Shown here: in pieces, positions 5,133 through 47,135 of the stretch | How positions within the stretch are numbered: the stretch's first letter is position 1 | Layout: each line of letters opens with the position of its first letter | From: Hyalangium minutum | GTDB taxonomy: Bacteria; Myxococcota; Myxococcia; Myxococcales; Myxococcaceae | DNA: 64,000 bases | Reading direction: 5' to 3' | Assembly: GCF_000737315.1 (NCBI RefSeq) | Contig: NZ_JMCB01000019.1 | Location: 62,001-126,000, forward strand | Notes under the pieces: model-generated | What the model was told of the DNA's origin: nothing | Databases searched by the model: none | The model's input: the letters and a program-made list of their open reading frames with translations, nothing else | Position numbers and translations under genes: made by a program

Positions 5133-5207
5133 GCCCGGAAGGCTATACTGGGAAGCGCTCGGGCACAGGTCCTTCCTCGGGCCTCACTCGGCGTGCGCCC
5201 TTCGAGC

Positions 5208-5453
5208 TCAGTTGTTCAGCTGAAGGTCCGAGAGGTGCGACGCGCTCGAAGCCTGAACGAGCCATCGGTCGAGAATCGCCGAGTCCGTACAGGACAAAAT
5301 GAGATGCCGGGACTTCTCGTCTACTTCGACGCCCCTTGCAGCCAATACTTGCAGGACCGCGAGAGCCCGTCCCTGCGCTTGCCCCTCAGCCAGCCCCTTG
5401 AGCCAGCCTTGTTGATGCCCTTCCTCGCGAAGTTCGTCCGCATAGGACTTCAT
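5208..5453 (-). CDS. Putative nested small protein from an internal start in rpn (RpnS-like, 81 aa)
   Basis: In-frame ATG at 5453 preceded by GAGGAGG 5 nt upstream (minus strand GAGGAGGACTTG-ATG). Confidence 0.55.
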   Translation of the reverse strand: MKSYADELREEGHQQGWLKGLAEGQAQGRALAVLQVLAARGVEVDEKSRHLILSCTDSAILDRWLVQASSASHLSDLQLNN

Positions 5454-6218
5454 CAAGTCCTCCTCTCGCTCCTTACCTGCCACGGATTGTAACACTCGCC
5501 GGAGCGTCTTGCGTGCTGCTGGCGGCCCCACCTCGAACAGGTAGTGAACCACCGCACGCAACTCCTCCAGCCCCTCTGCCTCTGCATGAATCTCGGCCAC
5601 CAGCGCCTTCCATCCCTCCAGCCGCCAAGAGAGCCCTTCGTCACGCCCATGGCGCAAGAGGAGAAACGCCAATCGCGCCAACGGAGGCCCCGGGCGCGCT
5701 CGCAGCGTCTCCTCCCGCTCGGCCGTCAAGTCATCCAGCAGGTACTCGAAGCGCGGCACCAGGGCCCGCCATCGCTCCAACTCTCCTTCGTCACTGGGCA
5801 GTTGGAACAGAGCCTCCACCCGGCGTGGTGCCGTCCATCCCGCTTCTCCTCCGTGGTACATGACCAGTGGCACCACGACGGGCAGCACTTCGCTCGCCGG
5901 GTGCTCCTTGCGCCAGTGCTCCAGGTGACGCACCACGTACCGCAACATCCTCAACGCCATCCACCGATCGACCGAGGATTGGTGCTCCAGCAAGAGGTAG
6001 AGCAGGAGTGGCTGACCATCCTGGAGCTGAGCCGAGAACAACAAGTCGCTCTGGCTCTCTCTCAGTTCCGGGTCCACCACGCTGACGGGCTCACGGCGCA
6101 AGCTGGTCCAGTCCACCCGTGACACCACTTCCGGCGGCAGGACAGCGCGCAGCTCCGCAGCGGCCCGCTCGGGGTGGCTGAAGGTGAAGCGGGCGAACAG
6201 ATCGTGAGGACCCGGCAT
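5208..6218 (-). CDS. Rpn/YhgA-like recombination-promoting nuclease (PD-(D/E)xK-like)
   Basis: HDLFARFTFSHP, SDLLFS, LLLEHQS, PVVVPLVMYHG, EYLLDDL, and a C-terminal EG..QG/L.RW tail. Confidence 0.9.
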   Translation of the reverse strand: MPGPHDLFARFTFSHPERAAAELRAVLPPEVVSRVDWTSLRREPVSVVDPELRESQSDLLFSAQLQDGQPLLLYLLLEHQSSVDRWMALRMLRYVVRHLEHWRKEHPASEVLPVVVPLVMYHGGEAGWTAPRRVEALFQLPSDEGELERWRALVPRFEYLLDDLTAEREETLRARPGPPLARLAFLLLRHGRDEGLSWRLEGWKALVAEIHAEAEGLEELRAVVHYLFEVGPPAARKTLRRVLQSVAGKEREEDLMKSYADELREEGHQQGWLKGLAEGQAQGRALAVLQVLAARGVEVDEKSRHLILSCTDSAILDRWLVQASSASHLSDLQLNN

Positions 6219-36832: not shown

Positions 36833-37105
36833 CTCGTGCCTGCTCCTTCCCCTGTCACGCAGGATGCTCGGCCTCCCACGAGGCTCCCGCTCGCGGCGCA
36901 CCTCCGGAAAACCTAGTGCGCCGCCTCGAGGCAGGATGGATGCCGCTCTCCCTCCAGGCGGGCGGCCTGCAACCGCTCACGTTCCGGCTGCGGCGCCGGC
37001 ATCCACAACACCATTCCCGAGACCTCTGGATTTCACTATTTGTGATATTTTGCCACTCTGTTTGTGTTAAAAAGAGCGCTCCCCCAAACATCAGCGGAGC
37101 GCCCC

Positions 37106-38908
37106 ATGAAGCGGTCTCATCGGAGAATCGCCCTCAGAGCAGGCTCGGTCTTGTCCACGCTGTGCCTGCTGGCCGGTTGCGGCACGGAGTCCGCGCAACC
37201 CGAGGCCCCGTCCGCGGTGGAGCAGGTGTCTCAGAACGCCGAGTCCTCCGCGCGCCCGCCCAAGCTGGCCAGCCTGGAGGCCGTGCCTCTGGCTGCGCTG
37301 GGCAGCGCCACCCCCAGCCTGGTGCGCGCCACGCTGGCGCCGGGCGAGTCCGCCACCACGCTGTCGCTCACCGGTGACGACGACAAGCCCTTCACGCTGA
37401 GCGACACCGGCACCGGGGGCGATGAGAAGGCGGGGGACGGCATCTTCTCCGGCCAGGGTGTGATCAACTTCGATCTGCACCGCAGCACCCAGGAGCGCAT
37501 CGCCGCGCTGACCCAGCAGTATGGCCCGCTCACCTACACCAAGTTTGATGATCGCGAGGTGGTGGGCGAGGAGCGGCTGGAGCCCCAGCCTCTGGGCGCG
37601 TTCTCCCCGACCGCGGCCGCCGCCATTCCGCTCAGGGCGCAGGGCGTGGCCGCGGCCATCAACCCGGCGCGCTCCCTCATCATCACCGACCCGGCCGTCA
37701 TCAATGATCCGACGCGGACCTACAATCCGTGCACCGGCGCGGGCAACCCCGCGGGCAAGTGGACGTTCAACCACCTGATGACGGAGATGGCCAACCAGCC
37801 GCTCACCGGCATCGCTCCCTCGGCGTTCGTCCTCAAGTGGCTCCAGCAGTGGTCGTACAACTACCCCGTCAATGGCTGGACGGTGCCGGCTCGGCCGAAC
37901 ATCAACCCGATGCTGCTCAACCTGTGGCCCAAGCTGAGCAACGGCCAGCTGGATTTGACGCGCTCGCCGTTCAAGCTGGTGGCCATCGTCAACCGGCCGG
38001 ACCTGGCCAGCTCGCGGGGCAATGGCGGTGGCTATGGCGGCGGCATGGTGGGCGAGCTGCGCTTCGTCTTCGCGGCGGTGGATCGCAGCTACTCGCGGTG
38101 CACCGTGCCCTTCCTGGTCATCCTCGAGTACCAGGTGCCGGTGACGACGTGCACGCAGGCGCGCACCTGGGGTCAGAAGTGGGTGAGCCTCACCTCGCAG
38201 GTGCCGGGCTCCAGCGCGTACAACTCTCTGCTGGAGTCGCTCACGCAGCAGGTGGTGTTGCGCAACGCCATGCCCTCGCGGCCCAACGGGAGTGCCATCA
38301 ACCAGGTGCGCAGCAACGAGAACTGGCTGTCTCCCATCTGGGAGGAGCGCGAGTTCCAGCTCTACTTCAGCGGCGCGAACCCGTCCGAGTTCTTCACGGG
38401 CCTGGCGCCGGGCAACCTGGCGGGGCACACGACGGCGCAGACGCCGCATGACTCGCTCAACGCTCTGCCGGTGCTGGACAGCTACGTGAACGCCGCGACC
38501 TGCCCGAACGTGGCCGCCAGCAACTTCACCATTCCCCTGCAGTGGCCCGCGAGCACCCACTTCAAGGGCGCCAACCCACAGATTCCTTCGGTCTCCACCA
38601 CCTTCTGGCAGCTGAACAACCCGGCCTCCATCACTCCGGCGGGCTGCGGCACGCCTGCGCGCTACCGGCTGTCGCTCAACACCTGCAATGGGTGCCACGC
38701 GCGGGAGACGAACACCCCGTTTACGCACATCAACCAGTTCGGTGGACTCTCGCCGCTGCTCACGTCCAGCCCGCTGGTGGTCAACGAGCCGCTCACGGGC
38801 ATTCCCCACACGTACAACGAGCCGGTGCGGCGCGCCCAGGTGCTGGATCAGCTCGCCAATCAGGTCTGCCCCACGTTCAGCCTGAACATCCCGCCCTTCA
38901 GCCACTGA
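37106..38908 (+). CDS. Lipoprotein with an EF-hand-like 'choice-of-anchor' motif and one CxxCH
   Basis: Lipobox LLAGC, LSDTGTGGDEKAGDGIFSG, GELRFVF, C-terminal CNGCH. Confidence 0.75.
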   Translation: MKRSHRRIALRAGSVLSTLCLLAGCGTESAQPEAPSAVEQVSQNAESSARPPKLASLEAVPLAALGSATPSLVRATLAPGESATTLSLTGDDDKPFTLSDTGTGGDEKAGDGIFSGQGVINFDLHRSTQERIAALTQQYGPLTYTKFDDREVVGEERLEPQPLGAFSPTAAAAIPLRAQGVAAAINPARSLIITDPAVINDPTRTYNPCTGAGNPAGKWTFNHLMTEMANQPLTGIAPSAFVLKWLQQWSYNYPVNGWTVPARPNINPMLLNLWPKLSNGQLDLTRSPFKLVAIVNRPDLASSRGNGGGYGGGMVGELRFVFAAVDRSYSRCTVPFLVILEYQVPVTTCTQARTWGQKWVSLTSQVPGSSAYNSLLESLTQQVVLRNAMPSRPNGSAINQVRSNENWLSPIWEEREFQLYFSGANPSEFFTGLAPGNLAGHTTAQTPHDSLNALPVLDSYVNAATCPNVAASNFTIPLQWPASTHFKGANPQIPSVSTTFWQLNNPASITPAGCGTPARYRLSLNTCNGCHARETNTPFTHINQFGGLSPLLTSSPLVVNEPLTGIPHTYNEPVRRAQVLDQLANQVCPTFSLNIPPFSH

Positions 38909-38924: not shown

Positions 38925-38952
38925 GGCCTACCTCTCGCCCCAGAGGTAGGCC
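38925..38952. terminator. Perfect 11-bp stem hairpin between convergent genes
   Basis: GGCCTACCTCT-CGCCCC-AGAGGTAGGCC. Overlaps the Uma2 stop codon. Confidence 0.55.
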
Positions 38953-39482
38953 AAATCCAGCTCCAGAGCCTCGAAGGGCTCCGCACGTACACGGGCCAGC
39001 CCCGTGTGCGTGACGAGCAGCACGTAGCGCGTGCCCTCCAAGCGGAACACCTCCAGCGTGCGCGCTTCCGGGTCCATCAACCAGACGTGCCGCACGCCCT
39101 GGCGTGCGTAGAGGGGAAGCTTGAGTCCTCGGTCCAGGGCGGAGGTGGACGGGGAGAGCACTTCGCACACCCAGTCCGGAGCCAGAGTGAGCGCGGCGGT
39201 GCGCGGGGGCCGAGACAGGCGCTCCCGGCGCCAGCCCGCGAGTTCGGATACCAGGACGTCCTCACCGAAGTGCGGCTCGGGCTTAAAGAGGATGATCCAT
39301 CCTCCCGGCCCGCGACTGCCCTCATCGAACGCCACCACAAGCTTGGCGCCCACACGCGAGGCCGCGACCGTATGAGGCGTGGCGGGCCGGGGGCTGACGT
39401 GCAGTTCCCCATTGATGAGTTCCCCCATCACGTTCTCGGGCAACGCCTCCAGATCCGCGTAGGTGGCCGGCTTCTTTCCCAT
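38928..39482 (-). CDS. Uma2 family endonuclease-like protein
   Basis: ATY.DL, ELINGEL.VSPRP..PH, LAGWRRER, APDWVCEVLSPST..DRGLK..YA..GV..WL.DP. Start uncertain. Confidence 0.9.
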   Translation of the reverse strand: MGKKPATYADLEALPENVMGELINGELHVSPRPATPHTVAASRVGAKLVVAFDEGSRGPGGWIILFKPEPHFGEDVLVSELAGWRRERLSRPPRTAALTLAPDWVCEVLSPSTSALDRGLKLPLYARQGVRHVWLMDPEARTLEVFRLEGTRYVLLVTHTGLARVRAEPFEALELDLAYLWGER

Positions 39483-39636
39483 GACTTCCCCATGTTCCTC
39501 GACGCCCATCCCTGTTTCCATGGGAGGAGGACATAGCAACCCGGTCTGACGCTCCAGGTCTCCAGCCATGAACCTACCCTATCAGGTTGGCTGGGGGAAC
39601 GTGCCCCCAAAGCCACGGAGTGGGTAAAGTCATGGA

Positions 39637-40320
39637 ATGAGCATGACCCCGGTGGCATCACAAGCATTGGCCATGATTCTTGCCACCTTGCTCGTCTCCT
39701 GCAGCGTGACGCGCTCCGCAGAGATTGGCCCCTTGAGTCCACGGGAGCTGACGAAGTACGCGCTCGTTGTCGAGCAGCGCCCGGACGGGCAAGTCGCCTC
39801 CGCCTGGATCCCACTGAAGGAACTCGATCTGCCGAAGTACGCCCTGACCTCGAACAGGCTCGACACTTACCGGGAGATCGTACGGGTCTCCTCTTCGGGG
39901 TTGGGCGAGTATTGCGAGGGTCGGCACGATCAATGTCTGGAGGACTGTCTCAGCAGCCCCAAGCCCTTCGTGATTGGAGGCCGCAAGTACATGGACACCC
40001 AAGCTCAGCCATGGCGCAACGCCCGGGGATGGTGGTGCTCGAGCAACTGCCTGGAGGAGATGATCCGGTGCAAAAAGGGCCGCGGTGAATGGGCGGACCA
40101 GTATGCCCGGTTCGATGCGATCGACCCGGCCATCGACTGGATCAAGCGGCATCGTGAGGAACTCGCCGTGGGCACCGCCGTGGTCATTGCCGGCGTGACT
40201 TTCGCCGTCGTCGCTGTGGGTACAGGAGGAGCGGCCCTCGTGCTGATACCGCTGTTGATCCTGGCCGAAAGTTCCTCGGAGCCCCCGGCCGACGCTCGGC
40301 TCGCGGAGGCGTGGCGGTGA
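39637..40320 (+). CDS. Lipoprotein with Cys-rich core and hydrophobic C-terminal hairpin
   Basis: Lipobox LLVSC, C-x6-C-x3-C and WWC-x3-C-x6-C motifs, long hydrophobic C-terminal stretch. Confidence 0.7.
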   Translation: MSMTPVASQALAMILATLLVSCSVTRSAEIGPLSPRELTKYALVVEQRPDGQVASAWIPLKELDLPKYALTSNRLDTYREIVRVSSSGLGEYCEGRHDQCLEDCLSSPKPFVIGGRKYMDTQAQPWRNARGWWCSSNCLEEMIRCKKGRGEWADQYARFDAIDPAIDWIKRHREELAVGTAVVIAGVTFAVVAVGTGGAALVLIPLLILAESSSEPPADARLAEAWR

Positions 40321-41153
40321 ACGCCTTTGAAGCGCTCACCCAGGCCGAGGCCTTCATCGCGCTCGGGCGGCAAGCCGCGCACGTGAACGGCCAGGAAGCG
40401 GAAGAGCAGCTCTGGCTCTACCTGCGCGCGCTCTGCCACTTCATCCGTGTGACAGGTCAGGTCTACCGGTTCGAGGATGCCCTCGCCGCTGCCACTCCGG
40501 GGGAGCCGCTGCACCTCGGTGCACACCTCGGCTTGCAAGAAGGCTCTTTCGCGCAGCGGGCGGCGGAGCTGCTGCTCCGCAGGGTGTACACACCCGCAGA
40601 ACCTCAGCAGCCCATCCGCCTGCTCATCACCCTCCTCCACTTCCTCTCGGAGACCGGACAGCTCGGTGATGCCGAGGACTTCTTTCTCCACCATCTGGAA
40701 GCCCCCCCCATGGCCATCGCGCAGTTCCGCAGCCTTGAGGAGGCCGAAGGATGGCTGAAAGGCGTCGCAGACCCTCCCAGCCCGGCCTACATCCTCATCG
40801 GCGATGAGTATTACCAATTCTGGTATCGGCGCGAGGACCAGACGCGAGGCCTGTACCGCGACTACCCCATCGCGGCGGAGCTGGAGGCCTTGACCGCTGG
40901 AGGGATTCCGCCTCACACGCCTTCCTTCGCGACCCGCCCCGAGGCGGAGGATTGGTTGAAGAACCACCCCACCCAGCCCTACACCTTTGTCTCGATCGCA
41001 GGTGAGCACTACCTCGCGGTCAACCACCAGAGGCTGAAGCGCCACTCTCTCCACCATGTCGCGTCGGCCTTGAAGCTCTGGGAGGAGCACAAGCGGGCCT
41101 TGGAACGTGAGTCAGGCTCGGCCCCGGGGGAGCCCCCCTTCAACCCCCAGTAG
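40317..41153 (+). CDS. Cytoplasmic partner protein with an internal duplication
   Basis: GTG overlaps the upstream TGA (GTGA 40317-40320). No signal peptide. Two F....EA..WLK..P....I.G/D.Y modules. Confidence 0.7.
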   Translation: MNAFEALTQAEAFIALGRQAAHVNGQEAEEQLWLYLRALCHFIRVTGQVYRFEDALAAATPGEPLHLGAHLGLQEGSFAQRAAELLLRRVYTPAEPQQPIRLLITLLHFLSETGQLGDAEDFFLHHLEAPPMAIAQFRSLEEAEGWLKGVADPPSPAYILIGDEYYQFWYRREDQTRGLYRDYPIAAELEALTAGGIPPHTPSFATRPEAEDWLKNHPTQPYTFVSIAGEHYLAVNHQRLKRHSLHHVASALKLWEEHKRALERESGSAPGEPPFNPQ

Positions 41154-41176: not shown

Positions 41177-42553
41177 ATGAGCCCCCTCTTCCTCTCCCTC
41201 CTCCTCGCCGCGGCGCCCTCGGCCCAACAGGCCCAGAAGCTCGCCCAGAGCAAGTCCTGGGAGGATCTCTACCTCGCCTACTCCGCCGCCGATCCCAAGG
41301 GCTACTCGGAGGCCGATCGCAAGGCCATCGCCGCTCCCCTCCTCAAGGGCTGCGAGGCGCTCGTCGCTGGTGACGCCGTCATGGCCTACTCCCTGGGCGA
41401 GCGCTCCGTCGCCTTCGAGGAGTCCCCCGGCGGCCTGCGCTGCCTCGCCCGCGCCGCCCTCAGCACGGATCAGCGCGGCACCGCCGAGGAGGCCCTCCGC
41501 AAGGGGCTCGCCAACTACCCCAAGGAGGGCGCCTTCGGCCTCGAGCTCGGCAAGCTCCTCATCGGCGACAAGGACGGCCCCGGCGCCATCGCCGCCCTCG
41601 AGAAGGTCCCCCCCCGCTCCCCCCAGGCCGCCGAGGCCAAGAAGCTCCTCCAGAAGGCCCGCAGCCTCTCCGCCGAGCAGTCCCAGGCCCGCGCCGAGGC
41701 CGAGCAGCTCGAGCGCCGCCTCAATGGCGGCGAAGGGCCCTCCCGCGGCAAGACGAAGCCCGCCGTCGCCCAGGCTCCCGATGACGGCGACACCCGCCCC
41801 GCCAGCCTCACCTACGAGTCCGGCGTCGGCGAGGACGGCATGCGCACCCGCTCCAACCGTCGCTTCGTCATGAAGTACTTCAACAACAACCGCGACTTCG
41901 GCCAGCGCGCCGAGTACGAGGGCCGCGTCGTCGCCGCCCTCGAAGCGGCCTACGAGCACACCCTCGGCATCCTCGGCGAGGCCCGCGAAACCCCCGTGGA
42001 CGTCATCCTCTACACCCGCGAGGAGTTCCGCACCCACCAGGGCGCCTCGCTGGCCCGCTCCGCCGCCGGCCTGTACTCGGACGGCGCCATCCGCATCAAC
42101 GGCGGCGCCGAGCTCACCGAGCAGACCCAGGCCACCCTCGTCCACGAGTACGTCCACGCCGCCGTGGACGAGCTGTGCGGCGGCAGCCACCAGCTGCCTA
42201 CCTGGCTCAACGAGGGCCTCGCCGAGTACATCGAGTGGCGCTACCTCGGCGGCGATGGCCCCCCCATCGTCGTCGGCAACGCGCTCCGGGGTGCCGCCCG
42301 AAGCGGCCGGCTCCCCAGCCTCAGCGCCCTGGCCCAGGGCATGCTCATCCAGACGGCCGACCCGGGCCTGGCCTATGCGACCTCGGCGGTAGCCGTCCGG
42401 GAGCTGATGCGGCGCGGGGGGGCCCCTCGCCTGCTCACCCTCCTGCGCGAGGTAGGCCAGGGCACCCCCTTCGAGCAGGCCCTCCGGGCCCACTACGGGA
42501 TGGACGTGGCAAAGCTGGACGAGGACCTCAAAGCGGCCCTCTCCCAGAGGTAG
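41177..42553 (+). CDS. Secreted TPR plus zinc metallopeptidase (MA/gluzincin-like)
   Basis: Signal peptide LLLAAAP, TPR-like helices, HEYVH followed by WLNEGLAEY. Confidence 0.85.
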   Translation: MSPLFLSLLLAAAPSAQQAQKLAQSKSWEDLYLAYSAADPKGYSEADRKAIAAPLLKGCEALVAGDAVMAYSLGERSVAFEESPGGLRCLARAALSTDQRGTAEEALRKGLANYPKEGAFGLELGKLLIGDKDGPGAIAALEKVPPRSPQAAEAKKLLQKARSLSAEQSQARAEAEQLERRLNGGEGPSRGKTKPAVAQAPDDGDTRPASLTYESGVGEDGMRTRSNRRFVMKYFNNNRDFGQRAEYEGRVVAALEAAYEHTLGILGEARETPVDVILYTREEFRTHQGASLARSAAGLYSDGAIRINGGAELTEQTQATLVHEYVHAAVDELCGGSHQLPTWLNEGLAEYIEWRYLGGDGPPIVVGNALRGAARSGRLPSLSALAQGMLIQTADPGLAYATSAVAVRELMRRGGAPRLLTLLREVGQGTPFEQALRAHYGMDVAKLDEDLKAALSQR

Positions 42554-42686: not shown

Positions 42687-45600
42687 ATGTCCGACACGCG
42701 CGCGTCGATGAGAGAGTTTCGCTTCCTCGACGAGAAGCGAAAGATGGGGAGCCTTTCCCCCACAGAGGAGGCTCGCTGGACCGAGCTGCGTGGACTCCTG
42801 GGAGTCCAGGACGCGCCGGTGCAGGAGCCAGCCGCGGCAGCGCCATACGCGCAGCCCCAGGGCTACTACGGCGCCGACGGCCAGTGGTACGCCGCTCCCG
42901 CCGAGGCCCAGCCTCAGGGCTACTACGGCGCCGATGGCCAGTGGTACGCCGCCCCGGCCCCGTATCCGCAGCCGCAGGGCTACTACGGCCAGGACGGCCA
43001 GTGGTACCCCTACCCCGCGCCCGCGTATCCGCAGCAGGGCTACGATCCGAACCAGGCCTACGCCGCTGCCTACCCGCAGCAGGGCTACGATCCGAACCAG
43101 GCCTACGCCGCTGCCTACCCGCAGCAGGGCTATCCGCAGCAGGGCTACCCGCAGCAGGGCTACGACCCGAACCAGGCCTACGCCGCCTACCCGCAGCAGG
43201 GTTATCCGCAGCAGGCCTACGATCCGAACCAGGCCTACGCCGCCTATCCGCAGCAGGGTTATCCGCAGCAGGCATACGATCCGAACCAGGCCTACGCTGC
43301 CGCCTACCCGCAGCAGGGCTACGATCCCAACGCCGCGGCCTACGATCCGAACCAGGGCTACGTAGCCCCGGCCGAGGCGCCGCAGGCCTACGACGCCCAG
43401 GCCTATGCCGCTCCGGGCTACGCCACGCAGGGCCAGTACCCGGCGGATCCGCAGCAGGCTTACGCCGCTGACTACGCGCAGCCGTATGACCCGGCGCAAG
43501 CCCAGGTCCAGGAAGCCTGGACCACCACTGCAGAGCCCACTTACGAGCCGGCCGCTTCCGAGCCGGCGGCGCCCCTTGCTGGTGCGGAAGAGGTCGATTT
43601 CACCGCGCTAAGCACGCCCACGTCCTGGAGCCCTCCCGAGGAGCCCGCTCCGGCTGCGGCAGAGCCGGAGGCCCCTCAGGCGGTGGAGGCGGATGACTTC
43701 GTCGAGGTGTCCGCCGATGAGGTGACGTCGGTGGAAGAGGCGCCGGAGCCGGTGGCCTCCTTCGAGGAGCCAGCCCCCGAGCTCTCGGCAGTATCTGCAC
43801 AGCCAGTTCCGGAACCCACTCCCGAGCCCTCCTTCGCGTCGCTCAGTGGCGGCTTCGAGGCCGAGCCCACTCCCGTGAGCGAGGAGGCCGCAACCCCCGT
43901 TGAGGAGGCTGTGGAGGCTGTGGAGGCTGTGGAGGCTGTGGAGGCTGTGGAGGCCGCGGAGCCCATTGAACTGGGCTCGGATGATGTCTCGCTGATCGAT
44001 AGCGAGGTGGAGCAAGTCGAGCCCGAGCCTGAGCCCGTGGCGCCGTTCGCCGCAGAGGCTGCTCTCGAAGCGCCTGCGCCTCAGCCCACCTCTGAGGTGG
44101 TGCTGGAGACCTCCTTCGCCGATGTCGCCGTCGAAGAGGCCGCGCCCCTGCCCGAGCCTCAAGCCACGTTCCAGACGGAGCCTCAGCCCACATTCGAGCT
44201 TCCGCCGGAGCCAGAGCCGCAGCCAACGTTCGAGCTTCAGCCCGAGCCGGAGCCGCAGCCAACGTTCGAGCTTCAGCCCGAGCCAGAGCCGCAGCCAACG
44301 TTCGAGCTTCCACCGGAGCCGGAGCCGCAGCCGACGTTCGAGGCTCAGCCAGAGCCCGAGCCACAGCCGACCTTCGAGGCTCAGCCAGAGCCGGAGCCGC
44401 AGCCGACGTTCGAGCTTCCGCCGGAGCCAGAGCCCCTCGCCGCCATGCCGGTCGAGGAGCTGTCGATCGACGATGTGCAGCCGGAGCCTCCGGCCGTCCC
44501 TCTGCCCCCGTCCATGGACGCCGCGGCCGATGCCATTCCGGAAGCGGAGATCTCGCTCACGTCTTCGGACATGTTCGAGGAGGCGCCCGCGGCTCCTGTG
44601 CTCGAAGCCGCGCCCATCGAGACCGCACCTCAAGAGCCCGCCAGTGCTGACGTGCCCACCTTCGAGGCTTCCGAGCTCTCGATGGAGCCGGCGGCCCCCG
44701 AGGACTCCGTGGCCTCGGCGCCTGCCGCCGCCGAAGAGCCCACGTTCGACGTGGCGGATCTCGGTGCCGAGATCGAGCCTCCCGCTCCGGCCATGGCCAT
44801 CAGCATCGAGCCCCCATCGCTCGAGCTGCGCTCCGTGCAGGTCGGGCCGGACCTGCAGGCGGATACCATCGAGCTCACCGAGGACGCCATCGAGTCCTCT
44901 CCCCAGGCGGCCGCCCCCGCCGCACTCACTGTGCCCTGGGAGACCGAGACCACCGACTCTCCTTCGCCCGAGTTCCAGGCGCCCCACGCTCCCGCCAACG
45001 TCGAGGACGTCGATCTATCGGGCAACCCCGAGGAGTCCGTTCCGCTCGCGACCAACGCGGACTTCGTGCCCGGCATGACGGACAGCGCGGCCTGGCAGTC
45101 GGACCGGTCCATCGAGCTCTCCTCGGAGGCCGCGCCCGAGACGGGCAGTGACGTCATCGAGCTGACCGAGGCGTCCATCGAGCCGCCGCCCGCTGCCATT
45201 CCCGCGCAGGACGGCTGGAGCGCCGAGCTGACGGCCCAGGAGGCTGTTCCCTCCACGTCGGCGGACGGGTGGAGCGAGCAGGCTCCCCAGGACAGCTCCT
45301 GGTCCGAGGCCCCGGCCCAGCAGGCCCTGTCCTCCGAGTGGAACGCCACGCCCGAGAACACCGAGAGCGCGCCGCCCGCCTGGAGCGCGCCGGAACAGGC
45401 GCAGGACGACCAGCCCGTTCTCGAAGCCACGCCCGCGGATCAGGATCAGCCCTGGTCTGCCCAGCCCGAACCCGCCGCTCAAGGCGAGTGGTCCCCCAGC
45501 ACGCCGCAGGACACGGGCTGGCAGGAGCAGGCCCCCGCCGCCGAGACGCCGGGCTGGGAGGCCCTGCCCGTGGACTCCGCGCAGGAGTTCGACGCCGTCC

Positions 45601-47135
45601 CGCAGCCAGAGGCCGCACAGGCCCCAGCGCCCGCGCAGGAACTGCAGCCGGTCGAAGAGCTTCAGCCTGCCGAGGAGCTTCAGCCTGCCGAGGAGCTTCA
45701 GCCTGCCGAGGAGCTTCAGCCCATCCAGGAGCTTCAGCCTGCCGAGGAGCTTCAGCCCATCCAGGAGGCGGAGCCCGCCCAGGAGTGGACGGAGCAAGTG
45801 CCTCCTGCTCCCCCGCAGCAGCCCGAGCGCGCCGAGTGGGCCGAGCCCGAGCCCGAGTGGATCAATGATCCGCCGCAGCGCGACGTGTTCGGAGAGACCA
45901 CCGAGATCAGCAAGCTCTCCGGTGAGCAGGATGAGTACGCGCCTCGGGAGCAGTGGCCCGAGGGGCCCAGCCCCTTCGCCAGGTCCATGGATGATATGGG
46001 CACGGGTCACGTGCAACAGCGGCCCTACCCGGCGGACTCGACGGCCTTCGACGCTCCGATGCAAGAGCTCTCCGGCGAGCCGGACTTCGCCGCGGACACC
46101 CACGCCCCGCCGCCTCCGCCCGTCGCGGCCACCGAGGCCGAGCCCATCGACGTCTCCTTCGATGACGCTCCGCCGCCCCCGCCCGTAGCGGCCACTGAAG
46201 CCGAGCCCATCGACGTCTCTTTCGACGACGCTCCGCCGCCTCCGCCCGTCGCGGCCACCGAGGCCGAGCCCATCGACGTCTCCTTCGACGACGTGCCGCC
46301 GCCTCCGCCGGCCGCGGCCGCGGAGATGCCCGTGGTGGAGCTCGGCGAGGTCGAGTTCAGCGAGGAGCCTGCCCCGGCGCCTGCCGCCGCCATTCCTCTG
46401 CCGCCGCCTCCGCCTGCCGCCGCCATTGCCCTGCCGCCGCCTGCTCCAGCAGCAGCTCGCGCCGCTCCGGCTCCTGCGCCCCGGGTGGCAGCTCCTCCTC
46501 CGCCCCCTGCGGCGGCCCGCGCCACTCCGCTCCCGGCCATGCCGGCGCCGGGCGTGGCACGTCCCTCGGCTGCGGGCATGCAGGCCATGAACGCGGCCTC
46601 CCTGCCTCCGGCCGCGCCCGCACGGGCCCCTGCCATGGCGATGGCGCCGCCGCCGCCGCCCCGCGCCGCGGCTCAGGCCGACAGCGCCGTGGCCCACGAG
46701 GAGATTCCGCTCTTCGAGCCCCTGGGAGTGCCGCTCTCGCCCAACACCTCCGCACAGGCCTCATGCTTCGTGGAGGGTGAGCACCGCGTCATCATCCACA
46801 CCATCGAAGGCCAGGTGAAGCGCGGCATCATCCGCGACGTGGACTTGCTGGACGAGACGATCGCGCTCGAGCAGCAGACCGGCTTCGCCCCCGAGCGCAT
46901 CCCTGGCAAGCGCGTGAAGGCCATCTTCTTCATGCTCCCGGCCGGCGCGCGCCAGCCGCAGGCCGAGGGCCAGAAGGTCCGCGTCACCTTCAGCGACGGC
47001 CGGCAGATGGCGGGCTTCTCGCGCGACTTCAGCGGGGGCGCTCAGGGCTTCTTCTTCACCCCGGCCGACAACCGCACCAACACGGCGCGCATCTTCGTCT
47101 ACCGCTCCAACGTGCAGGCCGTCGCCGAGGGCTAG
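42687..47135 (+). CDS. 1482-aa repeat-rich disordered protein with conserved globular termini
   Basis: N-terminal helix [11 protein letters not shown]...EEARW.EL, QGY repeats, Pro/Glu/Ala repeats, and a C-terminal two-part beta domain ([14 protein letters not shown]...VKAIFF; [20 protein letters not shown]; DUF6982-like from recall). Confidence 0.85.
43905..43949 (+). repeat. 5 x 9-bp GAGGCTGTG (EAV) tandem repeat
   Basis: Five perfect copies read directly. Confidence 0.9.
44176..44433 (+). repeat. About 7 x 36-bp coding repeat ([12 protein letters not shown])
   Basis: Seven QPTFE units in the translation. Confidence 0.85.
45637..45765 (+). repeat. About 7 x 18-bp coding repeat (ELQPAE)
   Basis: GAGGAGCTTCAGCCTGCC units. 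Confidence 0.85.
46104..46292 (+). repeat. 3 x 63-bp coding repeat ([21 protein letters not shown])
   Basis: Units start at 46104, 46167 and 46230. Confidence 0.9.

Follow-up and report, generated by a model that had tools for sequence, protein, structure and literature searches.

The 64,000-nt stretch of Hyalangium minutum DNA analysed here (contig NZ_JMCB01000019.1, positions 62,001 to 126,000; hereafter the window) carries at positions 39637–41153 two open reading frames (ORFs) on the same strand, P1 followed by P2. Together they form an obligate, translationally coupled, co-diverging and multi-copy cassette. P1 encodes a predicted lipoprotein with a cysteine-rich helical hairpin and a long hydrophobic C-terminal segment, and P2 encodes a predicted soluble cytoplasmic partner. 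Our preferred reading, to which we assign a probability of only about 0.4, is that the pair represents a new, Cystobacterineae-specific family of autonomous effector/protector cassettes resembling a toxin and its antidote, with P1 as the putative toxic component. The analysis itself shows the anatomy of the pair, its coupling, copy number and dispersal, the co-divergence of the two proteins and the asymmetry between loss of P1 and retention of P2. Autonomy, a persistently low G+C content at third codon positions, toxin–immunity cassettes beside the pair in several contexts and the strong conservation of the hydrophobic segment and the Cys hairpin also count in favour of this reading.

The coupling of the two genes is visible at the level of single nucleotides. 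A first-pass annotation of this stretch had noted a GTGA stop/start overlap, which is indeed present at 40317–40320, and an overlap of this NTGA type (GTGA, ATGA or TTGA) forms the junction in about 40 related pairs. The start of P2 is most likely the second in-frame GTG at 40317 and not the first at 40311, because a GGAGG Shine–Dalgarno sequence at 40305–40309 is spaced 7 nt from it, because the GTGA overlap arises there, and because the corresponding codon is the start in P0070, a relative with 94% identity and likewise 278 amino acids (aa). Upstream of 33 copies, only about 25 nt of Shine–Dalgarno and start context are shared within subfamilies, with no common promoter motif by eye, and a scan for sigma-70 promoters and terminators was uninformative.

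Co-occurrence and co-divergence were followed from both sides of the pair. Species-representative genomes scanned with a P2 profile gave 55 loci (L numbers below denote individual loci), and in most of them the P2 start coincides with the end of a P1 homologue. A metagenome scan with P1 patterns gave 26 loci, of which 25 could be evaluated, the 26th being a match to the hydrophobic segment only; the juxtamembrane helix DPAIDWIKRHREE served as a P1 search pattern. A P2-like gene lies directly downstream in all 25 evaluable P1-seeded loci and is full-length in 24 of them. For 29 intact pairs, the pairwise identity matrices of P1 and P2 correlate with r = 0.93, a value that none of 2000 Mantel permutations reached, and the mean identities are nearly equal with 54% and 55%.

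Loss of the two partners is asymmetric. Intact P1 is missing in 11 of the 55 P2-seeded loci. P1 is cleanly gone between the same flanking genes in L034 (compared with L033 and L036) and in L053 (compared with L050). Remnants of P1 persist in L017 and L037, where the 3′ end only is left, and in L041, L047 and L048, which keep the signal peptide and, in part, the hydrophobic end as well. At four further loci (L001, L004, L028 and L044), P2 stands in an unrelated context without P1. The comparison of 0/25 loci having P1 without a P2-like gene with 11/55 loci having P2 without intact P1 gives a Fisher p of 0.014. The orphan P2 genes are full-length, and the ratio of nonsynonymous to synonymous substitution rates (dN/dS) for the orphan pair L034/L037 is 0.23; judged by these values, orphan P2 genes are kept under purifying selection. 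Apparent loss of P1 together with selective retention of P2 fits the pattern expected of a harmful gene plus its antidote.

The cassette occurs in several copies per genome. As the scan relies on matches to search patterns, the counts are lower bounds: at least five copies are present in Archangium lansingense and in the metagenome-assembled genome (MAG) SMAG_U1589, and four each in C. fuscus Cbf10, A. violaceum, A. gephyra PVMSAZ and MAG SMAG_U10759. Paralogues within a genome are 39–84% identical. Locus L008 contains tandem copies, and an array in Cystobacter fuscus Cbf 10 (L032, 5493–8846) consists of a remnant divergent P1, an intact divergent P2′ of 270 aa and then an intact P1–P2 pair. 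Just upstream of this array, at 5165–5737, lies an ORF of 190 aa without an assigned family.

By context, the 56 loci divide into about 34 groups. Pfam assigns 169 families to their 145 non-redundant neighbours, and no family occurs in more than 3 of them; there is therefore no third conserved component, and the cassette is autonomous. Neighbouring genes are ordinary and encode 3-hydroxyacyl-CoA dehydrogenase, glutathione S-transferase (GST), M1 peptidase, OPT transporter, phospholipase D (PLD), RtcA/RtcB, kinases and TonB receptors, with transposases in only 2–3 loci. Codon usage sets the pair apart from these surroundings. The G+C content at third codon positions (GC3) had looked lower by eye in the first-pass annotation, and calculation bears this out with 0.78 for P1 and 0.82 for P2 versus 0.91–0.95 for the flanking major facilitator superfamily (MFS), 614-aa and peptidase genes. 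The same holds in 31/31 related loci, where the pair (mean 0.73) lies below the median of its neighbours (0.88), for which the gene caller required GC3 ≥ 0.72. In one synteny group (group A: L018, L021, L022 and L029), the pair is 74–77% identical and the flanks are 89–97% identical at the amino acid level, with synonymous divergence (dS) of 0.47–0.69 for P1–P2 versus 0.11–0.23 for flanking genes; in other groups the pair is similar to its flanks. The excess divergence in group A may be due either to weak codon bias or to paralogues replacing one another's alleles.

The anatomy of P1 is that of an exported and membrane-associated protein. The lipobox LLVSC (residues 18–22) recognized in the first-pass annotation reads L-V-S-C across 32 P1 copies, and the residue at position +2 is Ser in 24, Gly in 7, Glu in 1 and Lys in none. 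In Myxococcus xanthus, a lipoprotein with Lys at +2 belongs to the inner membrane, and one without it is sorted to the outer membrane (PMC3222651). By this rule, sorting of P1 is predicted to be of the outer-membrane type. The small N-terminal domain has the invariant residues L38, Y41, G51, W57 and P59. In the Cys-rich core that follows, also noted at first pass, all six Cys are invariant in 21 homologues, and the pattern is retained in divergent and "mini" members described below. The spacing of these Cys is mirror-symmetric, CX6CX3C…CX3CX6C. The AlphaFold2 (AF2) model of P1 has a mean predicted local distance difference test score (pLDDT) of 67.7, with 81–94 in the core, and places the Cys on the antiparallel helices 89–106 and 126–146. 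From this model we infer a hairpin stapled by three disulfides as well as their pairing. A disulfide-stapled hairpin fits an exported protein.

The long hydrophobic stretch described at first pass corresponds to residues 176–210, with a Kyte–Doolittle hydropathy (KD-19) of 1.8–2.5. Nearly all full-length copies keep it at exactly 35 residues, and G179, I184, A185, G186, F189, G198, L201, L203 and P205 are invariant. Together with the Cys hairpin, this segment is the best-conserved part of P1, distant and mini members included. It could be a membrane anchor, or a helical hairpin, or one long kinked helix; AF2 drew it as low-confidence strands. The C-terminus of P1 is, in line with the expectation at first pass, of membrane type, and it carries no nuclease domain. 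Beyond the segment, the tail varies from 4 to 20 aa among relatives, and its conserved A-E-A is better explained by the P2 ribosome-binding site GGAGG than as a protein feature. A 35-residue segment of transmembrane (TM) grade should act as a Sec stop-transfer signal and hold P1 in the inner membrane of the producer. Lacking the Lys(+2) retention signal, the lipid anchor probably takes the N-terminus to the outer membrane, while the C-terminus would stay in the inner membrane.

P2 has neither a signal peptide nor a TM segment (maximum KD-19 0.81), in agreement with its earlier description as a signal-less partner. Its isoelectric point is 5.6, and its single Cys is not conserved. The AF2 model has a pLDDT of 80.6 and a predicted template modelling score (pTM) of 0.69. 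Residues T48, G49, Q50, Y52, F54 and E55 as well as T115, G116 and Q117 are invariant and lie in the motifs TGQvYrFED and DTGQl. Each unit of the C-terminal half bears an F-x-(S/T)-x-x-E-A-E-x-W-L helix. As modelled, P2 is an internally duplicated, pseudo-dimeric protein, because its helical and its alpha/beta units both come in pairs and the latter align with each other (BLASTP E = 2e-4).

Size variants point to the core of the system. Hyalangium rubrum pairs a 290-aa P1 with a 190-aa P2. In the mini cassette of L045 (6603–7497), a 160-aa P1 consists of the lipobox, the Cys hairpin, the sequence MDEAIDWL and the hydrophobic end; the N-terminal domain is missing and the protein terminates directly after the hydrophobic segment, with no tail. 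Its P2 partner has 140 aa and contains one helical and one alpha/beta unit. Comparison by hhalign gives probabilities of 98.6% and 89.6% for mini P1 and mini P2. Because the mini cassette keeps just those parts, this core is the lipobox, the disulfide hairpin, the hydrophobic segment and one half of P2. The mini P2 further suggests that the 280-aa P2 arose by internal duplication.

Both families are narrowly distributed. A collection of 5.8 billion proteins contains 69 homologues of P1 at E ≤ 4e-32 and more than 166 of P2; the named ones all belong to Myxococcota, namely Archangium, Cystobacter, Hyalangium, Stigmatella and Vitiosangium with a few Myxococcus and Pyxidicoccus, and every one is annotated "hypothetical". 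By their homologues, P1 and P2 are real, previously unannotated genes conserved only in myxobacteria of the Cystobacterineae. The mature P1 domain was also compared with 1.84 billion representatives in a word-index-free profile search (E ≤ 1e-3). The search returned 98 representative clusters, of which the credible ones all have at most 290 aa and a single architecture of lipobox, Cys region and hydrophobic end. The sole long match is a low-complexity artefact, and the only named member among the divergent clusters comes from Hyalangium. Fusion of the Cys-rich domain to Rhs, PAAR, contact-dependent inhibition (CDI) or other delivery modules was found in none of the 98 clusters.

P1, P2 and their divergent members have no significant match in Pfam, NCBIfam, PADLOC or PHROGs (the only PHROGs match has E = 0.058), and the mini and intermediate cassette forms likewise had no significant family match. 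Weak recurrent Pfam matches of P2 (Arm-DNA-bind_4, Cauli_VI, SPOR and MerB) were discarded as uninformative, all lying on one 13-residue F-x-T-x-x-EAE-x-WL motif. A sequence-profile search of the PDB gave chance matches only, to designed pentatricopeptide repeat (PPR) proteins and HA2. With Foldseek at E ≤ 0.001, the AF2 models of P1 and P2 had no match in the PDB and P2 none in BFVD, although whole-chain queries may miss single-domain matches. With no PDB match for either protein and no viral match for P2, the pair would add two new folds. In the literature searched, no paper deals with a further SitA family or with the P1–P2 pair.

For the mode of action we propose the following sequence of events. 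P1 would leave the cytoplasm through Sec and receive its lipid at Cys22. The small domain and the disulfide-stapled hairpin would make up its periplasmic part, and the hydrophobic segment would sit in a membrane; the N-terminus would be in the outer and the C-terminus in the inner membrane. P2 would be produced in a fixed ratio to P1 through the GTGA overlap. We infer toxicity, a membrane target, protection by P2 and this topology of P1: the hydrophobic segment would be the active, membrane-perturbing part, and P2 would be the cognate protector that spares carrier cells. P1 could act in cis, in a module of the addiction or abortive kind, or be passed to neighbouring cells; exchange by TraAB would be the route least compatible with the anchor. 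A bolder version, which we consider unlikely as a whole, would make the pair the first family of lipoprotein toxins in myxobacterial kin discrimination to target the membrane. The stapled stalk would then place the hydrophobic hairpin into the inner membrane of a neighbour or of the producer itself, P1 would be a cellular, spanin-like two-membrane bridge that serves as a weapon and not in phage lysis, and P2 would be a new, internally duplicated immunity fold that neutralises it from the cytoplasmic side.

Several observations weigh against the effector/protector reading. Many of the duplications seem to be old and vertically inherited rather than mobile, because several context groups are syntenic across species of Archangium and Cystobacter, with housekeeping surroundings. 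Plasmid, phage and IMG/VR collections contained no copy with P2 as query (P1 was not searched there). Values of dN/dS lie between 0.13 and 0.5 throughout, so the alignments give no sign of diversifying selection. Searches with P1 and P2 returned no toxin domain or catalytic motif. Contact between the partners is the hardest point to explain, since P1 would be almost wholly periplasmic or membrane-embedded, with a dispensable cytoplasmic tail of 0–20 aa, and P2 is cytoplasmic. Membrane-acting toxins are usually countered by membrane immunity proteins, and P2 is soluble. The asymmetry may have one exception in L065, in which only the last 112 residues of P2 are left beside a P1 fragment. Some frameshifts may be long-read assembly errors; L009, L030, L038, L042 and L054 were not counted. 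Toxin cassettes adjoin the pair in about 4–5 of about 30 contexts, a modest enrichment over a chance expectation of about 7% (our own estimate from 25–80 sitAI loci per genome, PMC8546572).

The main rival is a benign envelope module, which we regard as quite possible, if short of probable. P1 would then be a structural or sensory protein, held in the inner membrane and lipid-anchored in the outer one as a periplasm-spanning tether or a disulfide-dependent sensor, P2 its cytoplasmic assembly factor or signal transducer, and the many copies a gene-family expansion typical of large myxobacterial genomes. Purifying selection and the conserved syntenic positions among housekeeping genes across Archangium and Cystobacter read naturally in this way, as does the lack of a toxin motif and of a mobile-element link. 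The strongly conserved intramembrane sequence suggests specific helix packing, translational coupling suggests a fixed stoichiometry, and the Cys-rich lipoprotein stress sensors RcsF and NlpE provide a precedent. A benign module, however, does not readily account for the scatter over about 30 unrelated contexts without functional partners, for frequent pseudogenes and remnants or for a persistently atypical GC3. Nor does it explain why P2, once its cognate P1 is lost, stays under purifying selection, while P1 is not found without an adjacent P2. For signalling, P1 exposes almost nothing on the cytoplasmic side. Even if the module is benign, a family pair now labelled "hypothetical" is defined, with about 100 clusters at 50% identity for P1.

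The features of the locus are collected in Table 1.

Table 1. Coordinates of the P1–P2 pair, its parts and its direct neighbours, in positions of the window.
Feature	Position	Strand	Remarks
P1, predicted lipoprotein gene	39637–40320	+	ORF, 227 aa; alternative start ATG 39643 gives 225 aa, cf. relative P0001
Predicted type II signal peptide with lipobox LLVSC	39637–39702	+	Lipobox at residues 18–22; codon of Cys22 (predicted lipidated) 39700–39702
Small N-terminal domain, helix plus beta-hairpin, predicted periplasmic	39727–39834	+	Residues 31–66; AF2 pLDDT 81–87; absent from mini relatives
Helical hairpin with six invariant Cys	39901–40074	+	C93-X6-C100-X3-C104 … C134-X3-C138-X6-C145
Conserved juxtamembrane helix DPAIDWIKRHREE	40120–40161	+	A165, W168, K170 invariant; P164, D167, H172, R173, E175 near-invariant
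35-residue hydrophobic segment LAVGTAVVIAGVTFAVVAVGTGGAALVLIPLLILA	40162–40266	+	Residues 176–210; uncharged, central G-x-G-G turn
Short acidic tail (17 residues) plus stop	40267–40320	+	Holds GGAGG for P2
P2, predicted soluble cytoplasmic partner gene	40317–41153	+	278 aa from GTG 40317; 280 aa if GTG 40311 (first start codon)
GTGA start/stop overlap of P1 and P2	40317–40320	+	P1 stop TGA 40318–40320; second in-frame GTG 40317
P2 N-terminal helical half, two helix-helix-TGQ-helix units	40311–40691	+	TGQ at 40452–40460 and 40653–40661; AF2 helices
P2 C-terminal half, two beta-alpha-beta-beta-beta units	40707–41060	+	Residues 133–196 and 204–250; AF2 secondary structure
Uma2-family PD-(D/E)XK gene	38928–39569	-	Pfam PF05685, E = 5.7e-26; divergent to P1; GC3 0.80
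Secreted tetratricopeptide repeat (TPR) plus Peptidase_MA_2 protein	41177–42553	+	Starts 24 nt past the P2 stop; may be co-transcribed

The neighbours in the window do not belong to the cassette. The Uma2 gene that the first-pass annotation placed next to the pair is there, at 38928–39569, but its adjacency is incidental: among 56 contexts, just 3 have a Uma2 gene within about 4 kb of the pair, and we rejected it as a third component. The Peptidase_MA_2/TPR gene was likewise rejected as part of the cassette, the arrangement being kept only in the 94% relative (L082). Two further genes in this region were recorded. A predicted lipoprotein of 614 aa with the lipobox LLAGC (37064–38908, + strand) has no Pfam family, its single match being a weak one to the choice-of-anchor X domain (E = 3e-4). 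An ORF of 1482 aa (42687–47135, + strand) consists nearly entirely of tandem repeats rich in Pro, Gln, Glu and Ala; its C-terminal domain, about 130 aa long, is non-repetitive.

Defence genes occur beside the pair at a few loci. The Uma2 gene in the window also matches the PADLOC candidate defence family PDC-S03 (6e-18). On a 6.7-kb contig of Myxococcus sp. AM011 (L083, 1347–6486), the pair comes after pheT-ihf and stands beside an Lhr-type DEAD helicase and a BrxC/BrxD-like ATPase, and these surroundings look like a small accessory or defence island. Both neighbourhoods, together with the low GC3 and the two-gene architecture of a membrane and a cytoplasmic protein, would suit an abortive-infection module similar to RexA/RexB, with P2 as cytoplasmic sensor and P1 as an effector that disrupts the membrane on phage attack. 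We consider such a role very unlikely. Defence-gene neighbours are found in only 2–3 of about 30 contexts, neither P1 nor P2 has a PADLOC match, five or more paralogues at fixed syntenic positions are unusual for a defence system, and it is hard to see what an abortive-infection effector would do with a lipidated, disulfide-rich periplasmic domain.

Bona fide toxin cassettes lie 0.1–8 kb from the pair at some loci: L005 (8976–11152 and 13100–14742), L028 (11664–16080), L006 (9845–10588) and L085 (3961–5896). They comprise SitA5 escort with Imm52 (twice), SitA6 with SitI6, and AHH with Imm11. SitA5 with Imm52 is directly downstream of P2 in L005, SitA6 with SitI6 is near L024, L026, L028 and L006, and the AHH toxin with Imm11 is 105 nt upstream of the pair in Stigmatella.

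The closest comparison is with the SitA/SitI system, which the first-pass annotation had taken as its model. In that version, P1 would be a SitA-like outer-membrane lipoprotein toxin passed on by TraAB-dependent outer-membrane exchange (OME), its hairpin would insert into the inner membrane, and P2 would be a SitI-like protein that is not transferred. We find this improbable, though the organisation itself is similar. As in Sit pairs, the cytoplasmic partner of the lipoprotein is encoded immediately downstream, coupled and presumably in the same transcript, and a genome has several paralogous pairs whose members co-diverge. Orphan P2 genes resemble orphan immunity genes, true sitAI cassettes are occasionally adjacent, and the taxonomic range is the same, being restricted to Cystobacterineae genera that we take to carry traAB. 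The +2 residue is of the outer-membrane type, without Lys (rule: PMC3222651, PMC5562445). SitA toxins are outer-membrane lipoproteins of six mutually non-homologous families (SitA1/2, 3, 4, 5, 6 and 7), which are defined by architecture, with an N-terminal escort domain defining each (PMC5562445, PMC8546572); a further family is therefore conceivable. The closest of them in size, and a precedent for such a pair, is SitA6/SitI6, with toxins of about 230 aa and immunity partners of about 240 aa.

SitA toxins have a sitI gene downstream, depend on TraAB for delivery, often reside on mobile elements and number 25–80 loci per genome (PMC5562445, PMC8546572), whereas P1–P2 counts at least five loci in the richest genomes, far below that number, and occupies stable, syntenic housekeeping contexts. 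All described C-terminal domains (CTDs) of SitA have their targets in the cytoplasm, and nucleases make up the majority (PMC8546572). P1, in contrast, shows no organisation into an escort and a polymorphic, modular CTD; it is conserved throughout, above all in the hydrophobic segment, its C-terminus is hydrophobic at TM grade, and Pfam returned no toxin domain. NCBIfam escort and Sit models matched neither P1 (E ≤ 0.1) nor its divergent relative P0223 (E ≤ 0.01), the presence of SitA1–4 and SitA7 models in the set being unconfirmed. In the same search, neighbouring genes scored as positive controls with SitA5_escort at 1.4e-100 (L005), SitA6 at 7.8e-58 and SitI6 at 1e-90 (L028, L006). An hhalign comparison of P1 with SitA6 aligned the signal peptide only (probability 5%), and profile comparison of P2 with SitI6 showed no relation; P2 matched no Imm family either. 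These comparisons place P1–P2 outside the known SitA families: the pair lacks escort homology, a polymorphic CTD and a mobile context, and its placement in the Sit system is not supported, while the resemblance of lipoprotein, coupled partner and co-diverging multiple copies stands.

Delivery by OME is doubtful as well. OME moves outer-membrane lipoproteins and lipids, not inner-membrane proteins, and the hydrophobic tail of P1 (35 residues, KD 2.0–2.5) should stop Sec transfer and anchor the protein in the inner membrane of the producer. The free diffusion in the outer membrane that transfer requires is thus unlikely for P1, given its C-terminus, and cytoplasmic immunity to a membrane-acting toxin would be atypical. 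The OME-delivered pore-former and the abortive-infection module are narrower forms of the effector/protector reading that the data do not require. Myxobacteria keep large repertoires of lipoprotein toxins as self-identity barcodes, and all six SitA families send their toxin domains to the cytoplasm. If the effector/protector reading is true, a cassette unrelated to these families, its active end of membrane type and its cytoplasmic partner with a new fold, would add to the mechanisms by which social bacteria are known to discriminate kin or addict themselves.

Other known systems match the pair in part. An autonomous two-gene operon with a 4-nt overlap, many dispersed copies, low GC3 and frequent decay of one gene while the other is kept recalls chromosomal toxin–antitoxin systems of types II and IV. 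Unlike the toxins of those systems, the putative toxin P1 is predicted to be exported, lipidated and disulfide-bonded, and the pair has no homology to their families. As a small lipoprotein with a Gly-containing hydrophobic hairpin, P1 also resembles the SlyB/PCP glycine-zipper 2TM lipoproteins (PF05433). This family model did not match P1 of the window at E ≤ 0.1 or 10 divergent homologues at E ≤ 5; the P1 segment is far more hydrophobic and has fewer Gly, and the Cys-rich domain and the obligate cytoplasmic partner are further differences. Pore-forming colicins, among the membrane-inserting bacteriocins, offer a likeness in the hydrophobic segment itself. Helices 8–9 of colicins E1 and A form an uncharged hydrophobic helical hairpin resembling the P1 segment of about 35 residues, and this hairpin-like segment is the most conserved element of P1. 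Pfam gave no colicin pore-domain match in P1. Unlike colicins, P1 would be Sec-exported and lipidated. Immunity to pore-formers and other membrane-acting toxins normally resides in membrane proteins, for colicins integral inner-membrane proteins, and not in soluble cytoplasmic proteins of 280 aa such as P2.

The predicted topology of P1 is closest to that of the unimolecular spanins (u-spanins) of phages, of the phage T1 gp11 type, which combine an N-terminal outer-membrane lipoprotein signal with a C-terminal TM domain in one protein (PMC6139136). The periplasmic part sets the two apart, being alpha-helical with six Cys in the P1 model and beta-rich in u-spanins, 0/58 of which have a periplasmic Cys (PMC6139136). 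P1 also has an obligate cytoplasmic partner, and it stands among housekeeping neighbours outside lysis cassettes and prophages, with no phage or viral-contig match (P2 as query). Read from its sequence alone, P1 shares the topology signals of u-spanins, which predict a link between outer and inner membrane (PMC6139136). A lipobox combined with a C-terminal TM segment is known mainly from these phage proteins, and a cellular example would be new.

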